DNA from: Dendrobates tinctorius
Taxonomy: Eukaryota
Assembly: GCF_039654945.1 (NCBI RefSeq)
Contig: NW_027361806.1
Coordinates: 7,688,001-7,752,000, forward strand
DNA: 64,000 nt
Direction of reading: 5' to 3'
Part shown: positions 119-19,500 of the stretch, piece after piece
How positions within the stretch are numbered: the first letter of the stretch is position 1
Layout: every line of letters begins with the position of its first letter
The notes under the pieces: generated by a model
Database searches by the model: none
Told to the model about the DNA's origin: nothing
What the model saw: the letters and a program-made list of their open reading frames with translations, nothing else
Program-made: the position numbers and the translations under genes

Positions 119-860
119 TTAAAACTGGCCACTTTTGATAATTTTGATCTAATGGCAGGTCCTCTTTATGGTCTATTTACATGGGAAAGTAATTGGTGAA
201 CAGATGGACTTAACATTTATTTCTAATCCTTAGCCTATATGAACACGTACATATTCGATCAGCTCTCATTCAAGGACGTAAATCGGCGCTTGTAAGTGGA
301 TCTTTAGTCTAGGCTTTAAATATTACTAAACTTAGATGTACGAATTTTGAGCTAAAATCTATTTTTACAATTGTGTTTCATTAAACATTAGTAGTCATTT
401 GGCTCCTACAGGCCCTATACTGTATATCACAGTACACGTCTGGCACAAGAAAATGGTAACTGTGAATCTATCAGTATACTTGTTCTGGTGGTGTTTGTTA
501 TCCTTAACTTTTATCTACAGAACTCCGATCTTTGATGTGGATACACGAGCCGCCCCGGAATCAGATGACCACTGAATAATCTGTGATAGATCTGTAATAA
601 ATCGCTCAGTGCACATCGGCTGTCACTTGGCAGCATGAAGATATTTTGTGCAGCACAACAATTGTTTCAACTGATGAATGAGGGGTTTGCTTGTTTGTCA
701 GATTATTTGCAGTTCGTGTAGACTGCTCGATTATCGTGAACGAGCGTTCCTAGGATCTTTGCCAACTCTACCACCAAAACAAGCTCACTGATAAACTCAC
801 TTTAACTTGTTCTGCAACTAGCAGGGATTTTTAAGTTTACAATTGGATCATTATACGCAC

Positions 861-1598
861 CTCCTGTAGTCTTCCCAGATGCTGGAGAAGCACTTACTGT
901 GGATTGAGTATTTCCGGTCACATTTGGATTAGTAGTCTTTACTGATCCTGGACTACTACTTGGGTTAGTAGACACACTACTTGAAGCTCTTGTCGTCTCT
1001 CCTGATACTGTAGGAACACTTGCCCCAGATGTGGTTTTTACGCTCTCACTTGGAATGGTAGATGTACTACTACCTGGAGATCGTGTAATCGGCCGAGTTA
1101 CTAGAGAATGACTTGTGCCGGATTGAGTGTTTACAGTCACATTTGGATCAGTAGTCTTCTGTGATCCAGTAACACTACTTGGGTTAATGGTCACAGAACT
1201 TGTTATCTCTTCAGGTACTGAAGCTCCACTTGTTCTAGATGGGGTTGTGAAGCTTAGACCTGGACTAGAAGATGCACCATGTGTAGATGTTGTAGTCTGT
1301 CCAGATGATGGAGAAGGACTTGCTGTGGATGGAGTGTTTCCGGTCACATTTGGATTAGTAGTCTTTCCTGATTCTGGACTACTCAGGTTAGTAGACACAC
1401 TACTTAAAACTCTTGTTGTATCTCTTGGTAGTGTTGGTCCAGTTGCCCCAGATGTGGTTTTTGAGATTACACTAGCACTAGTGGAGGACCCACTATCTGA
1501 AGATGTTGTTGTGATCATTCCAGGTTCCTGAGTAGTTCTTGATCCGGGTGTGGTTGTTATTTCAGACCTATGAATAGTTGTTGAACCTGTGACTGCAG
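861..1598 (-). CDS. Tandem PTS cassette exon A (246 codons)
   Basis: Same splice sites; ends in phase 1, so the gene continues left of the window. Confidence 0.8.
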
Positions 1599-16500: not shown

Positions 16501-19500
16501 AGGAGAATTGCAGTGGCACGTTTTCTGGAGTAATATAGGATTGAACATGTTCCTTTTAGCCTCCGGTTATTGCAGCATTGTTGGACATTTGCCTTGCCAT
16601 TGCTGTTTCAGCTTGTATGTTCCAAGAAAACCTCCTTCCATTTCTCATTATGGAAGATGCGGGCCAAGTCAAGAAGCTTATTTGGTCAAACCATTAAAAG
16701 AATTGTGGTTAGTAAGTGCTGTTGTGATTGATTGGAATGAATTAGACTTCGCACCATGAGCAGATTAAGCATGACCGGGTTATATAGAGAGTCTAAGGAA
16801 TAATTTGTTGCTCATATTAATTCCTTCCTGCAAGAAGATTCCCAGGTCACAGCCTTGAAAATCATCTCTGAATTAATACAACTGTAAGTAGAGCTTGAGC
16901 AGCTGAACAAGAACCGGAGTCGGCTGATAGGTCCCAGAACCAGGAGAAGAAGTCTGCAGATAGGACCAGATGTAACAGGAGCAAAATCAGGATCAGAATC
17001 TAAGAGGTGGAAACCAGTGCAGAACCAGATTTCACACCAATAGCTGTACATAGCAGTGCAAACCTGTGAAAATCAGAAATAAACCCAGGGGAAACCAGAA
17101 TCCAAACCAGGAGACCTCTGAGATCCAGGTCATAGATAAGAAAAGGTACCAGAGCCAAGACAGGACCAGGGTTAGAATCAAAGTCAGAACCAGGAGAAGT
17201 GGCCAAGAGTCAGTACCAGAAGTATATGCAAGAAATATCAATACCCTAAATTTTAGTAATTAATGCCCAGTATTACAAAACACACAGTAAAGGTCTGGAC
17301 AAGTCACCAAAGCACAAAGTAACAGAAAACAATGCTTCAATGACATTCCATAAGCTGCATTGACATTGAAATACTATCGTGAATGACCGTTCTTAACAAT
17401 GCTCGTTTCACGATCATCTTTCTGGAATTATCTGCTAACCAAACTGACTAAACATTTATGTGCACCTTCTCCCCTACTTGGTTTCCATCTATTGTCGTTC
17501 TTCTCTGGCTCTATGAAGCCAGATCTGTCAATCCAAGAAGATGAGGGAGGAGACTGAGGGAAAACAAGTAGATGGAAAGGTGCACTGGACTGTTTGGTCA
17601 CATCAAGGTTGCACCGAGCTCCAGTGCTTGATAATCACAGTCATTCTGTGCTGACAGTGCCTTTAAATGTTTGCTGCAGACACTTCCGCATCAAAAACCC
17701 AACTGTTGGCAGGAAAAAACGTTGCAAGAAAACACACATTTTTGACTATTTTTTTCCTACAGTAAAATGCTGTGTTTTTCGCAAGAAAACAAGGGGAAAA
17801 ACAAAGGCAAATGCGACATATGCACATACCCTGACTTGTAGTTTACTTATTCATATGTTTTACCTTTTATATATCATGGATATCACGGCTCTGATATTAG
17901 CTACAGCACAACCTCTGGAGCTATGGTTGGGACACTTTAAGCTCACTTTTAGGTTCTTACCGCAGGAACAACAATAATTATTAATGATCACAGCTGTATA
18001 ATAAGAAGATGTAGAATTACCACTTGAAGTAGAGGGGTTGGGGGCAGTAGAACTCCTTGGACCAGGTGTCACTTGTGGACTTGGAGTAGTGGTGGCTGAG
18101 GTCGTTGTCGGTAAACAGCCCGTACTACCACAGGATACTGTAGGTGTTAGTGTAGGTGTTACTTTGGATGTGGACATTCCTGCAAAATGGTCATACAGTT
18201 GTGGCCAAAAGTATTGACACCCCTGCAATTCTGTCAGATAATACTCAGTTTCTTCCTGAAAATGACTGAAAACACAAATTCTTTGGTATTATTATCTTCA
18301 TTTAATTTGTCTTAAATGAAAAAACACAAAAAGAATTGTCCTAAAGCCAAATTGGATATAATTCCACACCAAACATAAAAAAGAGGGTGGACAAAAGTAT
18401 TGGCACTGTTCGAAAAATCATGTGATGCTTCTCTAATTTGTGTAATTAACAGCACCTGTAACTTACCTGTGGCACCTAACAGGTGTTGGCAATAACTAAA
18501 TCATCCTTGCAGCCAGTTGACATGGATTAAAGTTGACTCAACCTCTGTCCTGTGTCTTGTGTGTACCACATTGAGCATGGAGAAAAGAAAGAAGACCAAA
18601 GAACTGTCCGAGGACTTGAGAAACCATATTGTGAGGAAGTATGAGCAATCTCAAGGCTACACGTCCATCTCCAAAGACCTGAATGTTCCCGTGTCTACCG
18701 TGCGCAGTGTCATCAAGAAGTTTAAAGCCCATGGCCCTGTGGCTAACCTCCCTAGATGTGGACGGAAAAGAAAAATTGACAAGAGATTTCAACACAAGAT
18801 TGTGCGGATGTTGGATAAAGAACCTCGACTAACATCCAAACAAGTTCAAGCTGCCCTGCAGTCCGAGGGTACAACAGTGTCAACCCGTACTATCCGTCGG
18901 CGTCTGAATGAAAAGGGACTGTATGGTAGGAGACCCAGGAAGACCCCACTTCTTACCCCGAGACATAAAAAAGCCAGGCTGGAGTTTGCCAAAACTTACC
19001 TGAAAAAGCCTAAAACGTTTTGGAAGAATGTTCTCTGGTCAGATGAGACAAAAGTAGAGCTTTTTGCGCAAAGGCATCAACATAGAGTTTACAGGAGAAA
19101 AAAAGAGGCATTCAAAGAAAAGAACACGGTCCCTACAGTCAAACATGGCGGAGGTTCCTTGATGTTTTGGGGTTGCTTTGCTGCCTCTGGCACTGGACTG
19201 CTTGACTGTGTGCATGGCATTATGAAGTCTGAAGACTACCAACAAATTTTGTAGCATAATGTAGGGCCCAGTGTGAGAAAGCTGGGTCTCCCTCAGAGGT
19301 CATGGGTCTTGCAGCAGGACAATGACCCAAAACACACTTCAAAAAGCACTAGAAAATGGTTTGAGAGAAAGCACTGGAGACTTCTAAGGTGGCCAGCAAT
19401 GAGTCCAGACCTGAATCCCATAGAACACCTGTGGAGAGATCTAAAAATGGCAGTTTGGAGAAGGCACCCTTCAAATATCAGGGACCTGGAGCAGTTTGCC

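Follow-up and report, generated by a model that had tools for sequence, protein, structure and literature searches.

Mucin repeats usually lie within one large exon, a generality invoked in an earlier sequence-only reading of the DNA analyzed here and in agreement with the literature (PMC1552070, PMC9578598). Exon 2 of MUC3A and MUC3B, with 15.9 and 39.3 kb, carries its repeats in this way (PMC9578598). In chicken Muc13, the domain in which Pro, Thr and Ser abound (PTS domain) is divided into at least 12 exons, each encoding one 20-aa repeat. Zebrafish Muc13 is similar, and the explicit proposal was made that alternative splicing could determine PTS length within one individual (Lang, Hansson & Samuelsson 2006, PMC1552070). 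MUC16/CA125 contains more than 60 repeats of 156 aa, each consisting of five exons and about 1.9 kb of genomic DNA (PMC3431878). The integumentary mucin FIM-C.1 of Xenopus is highly size-polymorphic via alternative splicing of its repetitive region, according to the passage in PMC7177656 citing Hauser & Hoffmann 1992, and PMC4948705, where it cites Lang 2007, refers to a frog mucin family with alternating SEA and PTS domains. Here, we describe a tandem array of mucin-like exons at the start of a 64,000-nt stretch of the frog Dendrobates tinctorius (GCF_039654945.1, contig NW_027361806.1, positions 7,688,001 to 7,752,000), referred to as the window.

The array comprises six units, which very probably are consecutive internal coding exons of a single expressed mucin-like gene on the minus strand, grown by duplication of whole cassettes of exon plus intron. 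The anatomy of the array, the constraint on its reading frame, the insertion of transposons after the duplications, the expression of the exon family and the use of the predicted splice sites are established in the following.

Anatomy of the exon cassettes

The six exons were located by a pattern search for a common acceptor and donor. In the direction of transcription, the exons and the sequences upstream of them are:

18179..17961, minus strand: next exon upstream of E6, 219 nt, phase 1-1, PTS sequence and 5 Cys
16360..17349, minus strand: intron upstream of E6, homologous to the remaining cassette introns; the cassette homology stops at 17349
16359..15832, minus strand: cassette exon E6, 528 nt, phase 1-1, 176 aa, 51% Ser+Thr
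13288..12551, minus strand: cassette exon E5, 738 nt, phase 1-1, 246 aa, made up of a head plus the three sub-repeats A, B and A'
10421..10107, minus strand: cassette exon E4, 315 nt, phase 1-1, 105 aa
7961..7221, minus strand: cassette exon E3, 741 nt, phase 1-1, 247 aa
5214..4492, minus strand: cassette exon E2, 723 nt, phase 1-1, 241 aa, carrying an in-frame deletion of 18 nt
1598..861, minus strand: cassette exon E1, 738 nt, phase 1-1, 246 aa

The search recovered exactly the phase 1-1 exons described in the sequence-only reading (738, 723, 741, 315, 738 and 528 nt from E1 to E6, every one a multiple of 3) together with their near-identical splice sites, all 12 of which are intact. The acceptor common to the six exons reads ...CTAACGCAG^CTGCA (^ marks the splice junction) with a conserved CGCAG^ end, the sequence before each exon follows the pattern ...TCTTC(TTC)CTATCTCCCAACTAACGCAG^, and the common donor is GGAG^GTG(C/T)GTATAA. 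The first two bases of each cassette exon complete a codon and the last base opens the next one. Therefore, each exon-exon junction codon is G+CT and encodes Ala. The upstream exon 18179..17961 ends in G and can thus be joined to E6 in frame.

Self-BLAST of the window showed that the cassettes are 70-85% alike across exon and intron from 120 to 17349. The unit size is 2.5-3.6 kb, with acceptor spacings of 3071, 2867, 2460, 2747 and 3616 nt, and a two-cassette higher-order repeat, sought in the self-BLAST offsets, was not seen. As alignment to the starts of other cassette introns continues in the 860 nt downstream of E1 and the downstream intron of cassette 1 runs off the window start, six is a minimum count. 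Thus, the six-unit array proposed earlier stands with regard to its units but not to their total number, and its coding strand is the minus strand.

Each full cassette exon consists of a head of ~50 aa and three sub-repeats of ~70 aa (A, B, A'). At the DNA level, A and A' are ~81% alike and A and B ~68% (self-BLAST). As had been claimed, the sub-repeats contain KTT(N/D)PNV(T/S), with one to three occurrences per exon, and NVT or NVS constitutes an N-X-S/T sequon for N-glycosylation. In E4, a 423-nt in-frame deletion joins sub-repeat A to the end of A', and E6 is missing sub-repeat A through an in-frame deletion of ~210 nt, which suggests that recombination between sub-repeats shortened both exons in frame. 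Pooled over the six exons (1,261 codons), the translation contains 24.2% Thr, 23.9% Ser, 10% Gly, 8.6% Pro and no Cys. This composition is typical of a PTS domain, and the region is a long tandem-repeat S/T/P region of the mucin type, which, judged by its composition, would be O-glycosylated. With one repeat unit in each of six phase 1-1 exons, the locus shows the multi-exon PTS layout.

A paralogue of exon 18179..17961 is found at window positions 20040-20369 (minus strand). It has the same CCATTTTGCAG^ acceptor, and its homologous donor is lost (TGCG^GTAAGA to TATGCTAATA). Both copies are separated by a Tc1-like transposon (18194-19832) with inverted ends of ~213 nt that are 87% alike. Its edge lies 14 nt from the acceptor at 18180, and its transposase open reading frames (ORFs) span 18517-19254 and 19273-19611.

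Order of events and coding constraint

Cassette-private insertions were identified in a multiple alignment of the introns. They resemble miniature inverted-repeat transposable elements (MITEs) and are given without strand, together with a fragment related to one of them:

14246..14644: MITE-like insertion, only in the intron between E6 and E5; 399 nt, 23-nt terminal inverted repeats, TAA-type target site
3390..3842: MITE-like insertion, only in the intron between E2 and E1; 453 nt, TTA duplication at the flanks
2498..2902: second MITE-like insertion, only in the intron between E2 and E1; 405 nt, 42-nt terminal inverted repeats (88% complementary), a different family
43..120: fragment of the family of 14246..14644, interrupting the downstream intron of cassette 1

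For the insertion at 14246-14644, an empty site is present in four sister cassettes, and the element is very high-copy in the public runs described below. The insertion at 3390-3842 belongs to the same family, as does a further copy at window positions 59004-59395, which is 72% alike to it. All three cassette-private insertions possess terminal inverted repeats and target-site duplications. Since they have empty sites in sister cassettes, they are later than the duplications. The sequence-only reading was right about the gain of different MITEs, and its homology began at 121 because the fragment at 43-120 interrupts that intron.

To find relatives of the gene, we used single-exon translations and not the spliced protein, so that a SEA domain split across exons could not score. 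Pfam searches with E5 and eight other single-exon translations gave no match above noise, and two putative SEA exon pieces produced only chance-level matches to PDB sequences and none in Pfam. A word-indexed search with E5 returned no match among proteins of 135-430 aa, the size range that it covered. An exhaustive HMMER search with E5 against 1.84 billion representatives yielded a single weak match (38% identity, E = 4e-5), P0001, an 875-aa 'hypothetical protein, partial' of Pristimantis euphronides, for which the word search returned only the protein itself and Pfam no domain. The gene, seen so far only in frogs, is apparently a frog-restricted, mucin-like gene.

The locus of this relative (L001, Pristimantis euphronides contig CBDIFN020013954.1) contains three cassette exons:

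1849-2427: 579 nt, open
5464-5983: 520 nt (remainder 1 on division by 3), frameshifted
10185-12317: 2133 nt, open

All three units are phase 1-1, judged by their donors and likely acceptors. Their homology to the window cassettes reaches ~270 nt into the upstream intron and includes pieces of the downstream intron, with ~68% identity. The exon at 5464-5983 runs into stops after ~95 codons and its two sister exons are open. It represents an assembly error or else an exon in decay, which splicing would have to skip. Downstream of the third unit come, in this order, a short PTS exon and a transmembrane exon, the latter encoding the hydrophobic helix GRVILGLLAAALVVGPVVACLV. By analogy with this relative, the window's protein is probably membrane-tethered. 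The annotated Pristimantis model begins within the intron before the third unit and leaves out the two upstream cassettes, an example of how easily such genes are missed or truncated in annotation.

The likely Pristimantis acceptor, TTCTTCAG^AT, is shifted 21 nt upstream, in frame, relative to CGCAG^ in the window. At the corresponding position (13289-13330 and sisters) the window has no AG, yet the frame is open across those 21 nt. Acceptor position is uniform within each species, one site serving all six cassettes of the window and the second all three of Pristimantis. In a tree built from upstream intron and exon head, the six window cassettes were separated from the three Pristimantis cassettes with 100/100 support, and adjacent cassettes were nearest to each other (E6 and E5; E3, E2 and E1). 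This species-wise clustering fits lineage-specific tandem duplication. Altogether, the earlier claim of growth by cassette duplication is well supported by the intron homology, the later insertions, the kinship of adjacent cassettes and the clustering by species.

Alternatively, the array may be old, with cassettes that predate the split between dendrobatids and Pristimantis and were homogenised in each species by gene conversion. We give this concerted evolution some weight, but consider it rather unlikely. Cassette layout and homologous intron DNA are present in both frogs, kinship is not the same in exon, upstream flank and downstream flank (e.g. E3 and E1 are closest in the exon, E2 and E1 in the downstream flank), and synonymous divergence of the exons (0.06-0.15) is below intron divergence. 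However, the intron flanks differ by 8-25% between cassettes, private insertions were not homogenised, and a single acceptor position per species, 21 nt apart, is more simply explained by duplication after the split. The choice between both histories is based on a comparison of two species only.

In the coding frame there is not a single stop across the 1,261 codons of the six exons, compared with 1-30 per exon in the other five frames. Mean pairwise identity is 91.8% for the exons versus 82.0% (upstream) and 84.1% (downstream) for 400-nt intron flanks, confirming that the exons are open while the introns have diverged. Pairwise gaps are multiples of 3 in 25 of 25 cases in the exons, but only in 53 of 168 in the intron flanks. 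Together with the stop-free frame, this is well outside what chance would give. The 25 exon gaps correspond to about six independent events, and because the sub-repeat length itself is a multiple of 3, the two large indels stay in register anyway, leaving four small indels, all in frame, as the conservative figure. When the observed 171 substitutions were placed at random, all six exons stayed open in 3.3% of trials, and at twice that number (approximately the intron level) in 0.1%. The ratio of nonsynonymous to synonymous divergence (dN/dS) of the cassette exons is 0.5-1.0. Thus, frame and composition are under constraint and single residues are not, as is usual in PTS domains.

The dN/dS values would also fit a decaying array, in which part or the whole of the array would consist of pseudo-exons that the gene can now do without. 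The frameshifted Pristimantis exon and the failure to see E5-private bases in the contigs presented below point in the same direction. Nevertheless, decay is very unlikely for the window: the six exons are open with frame-preserving indels and 12 intact splice sites, they are more conserved than the introns, and transcript-like contigs cover the exon family.

Under the preferred reading, growth by cassette duplication, the PTS domain is divided into large symmetric phase 1-1 exons, and unequal crossing-over very probably copied the 2.5-3.6 kb unit of exon and intron at least six times. After copying, the introns drifted and gained transposons while selection held the exons open, and recombination between sub-repeats probably shortened two exons in frame.

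Expression and splice-site use

We used Logan contigs of four public runs (X1, X2, X5 and X7; two coded organisms, three studies) covering the region 10090-16080. In X1 and X2, contig depth was 15-87 over E4 (10090-10489), 40-492 over E5 (12490-13289) and 27-276 over part of E6 (15690-16080). Depth was ~0 over unique intron DNA, the exceptions being the high-copy MITE (14090-14689) and a short element (11890-12089). Several contigs stop at 13290, which corresponds to the acceptor plus the AG common to the intron end and the end of the preceding exon. In addition, one X5 contig contains a joint 10421/15832 with the ends CT..AC (GT..AG on the minus strand), exactly at the predicted donor and acceptor. 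These data support that the exon family is transcribed and that the predicted splice sites are used.

The contigs also bear on a model in which the units are six separate small genes, each transcribed alone, which the sequence-only reading had named as the case that would speak against it. Each unit does yield a stand-alone ORF of 132-288 aa in the mechanical ORF list. These frames, however, begin at GTG or ATG within the polypyrimidine tract and the intron, none of the units has a start codon with a signal peptide, and the frames extend ~20 codons beyond the consensus donor. Furthermore, contigs end at the acceptor, one of them crosses a GT..AG joint between units, and no similar stand-alone protein of 135-430 aa is present in the word-indexed collection. 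We found no support for separate genes and regard them as hardly credible.

Likeness to E5 is only 90-95% for most of the exon contigs. At ~10 positions with E5-private bases (12551-13288), all or nearly all contigs agree with the sister cassettes instead. Some private positions, e.g. 12790, do show the base of E5 itself in organism B (X5 and X7). A silent E5 was considered, as the contigs lack its private bases, but this is indistinguishable from contigs that stem from sister cassettes or related species. We also rejected the joint between E6 and E4 as proof of E5 skipping, because exon ends are identical between cassettes: the last 32 nt are the same in E6, E5 and E4 and the first 29 nt in E6, E4 and E3. 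With a short side of 23 letters, the joint cannot tell which exons were joined.

For the same reason, the joint contributes little to the suggestion that the array is a splicing-tunable mucin, in which phase 1-1 exons are combined variously to give PTS lengths from 0 to about 1,260 aa out of six exons. It is correct arithmetic that any subset of the exons can be skipped in frame: the six exons and the upstream exon are all phase 1-1 with the same junction codon. With 315-741 nt, the exons are rather long by the standard of internal exons in vertebrates, one contig joint places the E6 donor next to the E4 acceptor, and such tuning was proposed for chicken Muc13 (PMC1552070) and splicing polymorphism reported for Xenopus FIM-C.1 (PMC7177656). 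However, the joint is a single contig of one run and does not discriminate, no other evidence of skipping was found in the contigs of the runs, and frame compatibility arises as a by-product whenever a symmetric exon duplicates and is no sign of regulation. We therefore consider splicing-tunable length unlikely, and a working length dial, with tissue- or stage-specific exon subsets setting glycocalyx height through dozens of isoforms of one gene, less likely still. If the latter were true, that regulation would be the reason why the intron ends have stayed nearly identical. Should combinatorial inclusion be seen in long-read cDNA, the 2006 proposal of splicing-controlled mucin length would become directly testable.

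Several points weigh against one expressed gene with consecutive exons. That the runs are RNA is a guess, and their contigs provide neither strand nor full isoforms. The exon contigs may derive from the sister cassettes E1-E3, from further cassettes or from a related species, and may thus not represent E5 itself. A dN/dS near 0.75 indicates weak constraint at the residue level, and as synonymous divergence is below intron divergence, the likeness of the exons could in part be due to exon-biased gene conversion. Finally, the 3' end of the gene lies outside the window and its 5' end is not placed here. Despite these points, we consider a single expressed mucin-like gene very probable, and all six exons would be joined in one mRNA.

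The remainder of the window contains further repeats. A palindromic block (21640-24990) includes a GC-rich 21/61-nt array (21768-22068) and an array of the 11-nt unit ACTACATACAT (22202-23036), both mirrored as reverse complements at 23648-24553 and 24693-24937. A 45-nt tandem array at 33822-34338 (minus strand; 11.5 copies, 88% matches) is open in two minus-strand frames and adjoins a PTS-rich open frame at 34423-34887. Identical 89-nt arrays lie at 43164-43336 and 44208-44380, and nearly identical arrays of an 81-nt repeat at 43721-43889 and 52271-52439. An intact-looking long interspersed nuclear element (48800-52107, plus strand) carries a 910-aa endonuclease/reverse-transcriptase ORF (49375-52107) and an upstream ORF (48800-49195) with an esterase-like motif.

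Comparison with known mucins

As in chicken and zebrafish Muc13, a membrane mucin, the PTS domain of the frog gene is spread over many near-identical exons with one repeat unit each. In contrast to the 20-aa exons of Muc13, the exons here encode 105-247 aa with nested sub-repeats of ~70 aa. Muc13 is marked by an EGF-SEA-EGF series ahead of its membrane span and by a gene position next to HEG1. In the Pristimantis relative, the PTS region runs directly into the transmembrane exon with no EGF/SEA/EGF in between, and neither a Pfam domain nor a sequence match links the gene to Muc13. By the features tested, the frog gene shares the layout of Muc13 and is not a member of its family. This multi-exon layout, first seen in chicken and zebrafish Muc13, is therefore also present in an unrelated mucin-like frog gene, which implies that exon-level expansion of mucins arose more than once.

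The frog gene and MUC16 have in common that the mucin region was enlarged by tandem duplication of cassettes of exon and intron. While the MUC16 repeat comprises five exons with a SEA module and a Cys loop, the frog unit is one PTS-only exon that contains no Cys and has no Pfam match. Likeness to single-exon mucin arrays, which grow and shrink by unequal recombination, is found inside each exon, namely in the sub-repeats and in the in-frame deletions of E4 and E6. In MUC3A and MUC3B the repeats are sub-exonic, whereas the higher-order repeat of the frog takes in the introns. FIM-C.1 is likewise a frog mucin with a repetitive region, but it is secreted and gel-forming with TFF modules and has no sequence relation to the cassette exons.

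In-frame cassette exons whose inclusion sets the length of an extended domain are also known from exons A, B and C of CD45 (PTPRC), the PEVK region of titin and the nebulin arrays. These are O-glycosylated or disordered segments in arrays that arose by exon duplication, and regulated splicing has been demonstrated for them. The proteins are unrelated to the frog gene, and regulated splicing of the frog array is hypothetical.

Taken together, neither the layout nor the idea of length control by splicing is new, as both were published for chicken Muc13 in 2006; what differs here is the gene and its scale. The array provides a clean and datable example of two nested levels of mucin domain growth, by sub-repeats within an exon and by whole cassettes of exon and intron, for which the transposon insertions and a second frog species supply the order of events.

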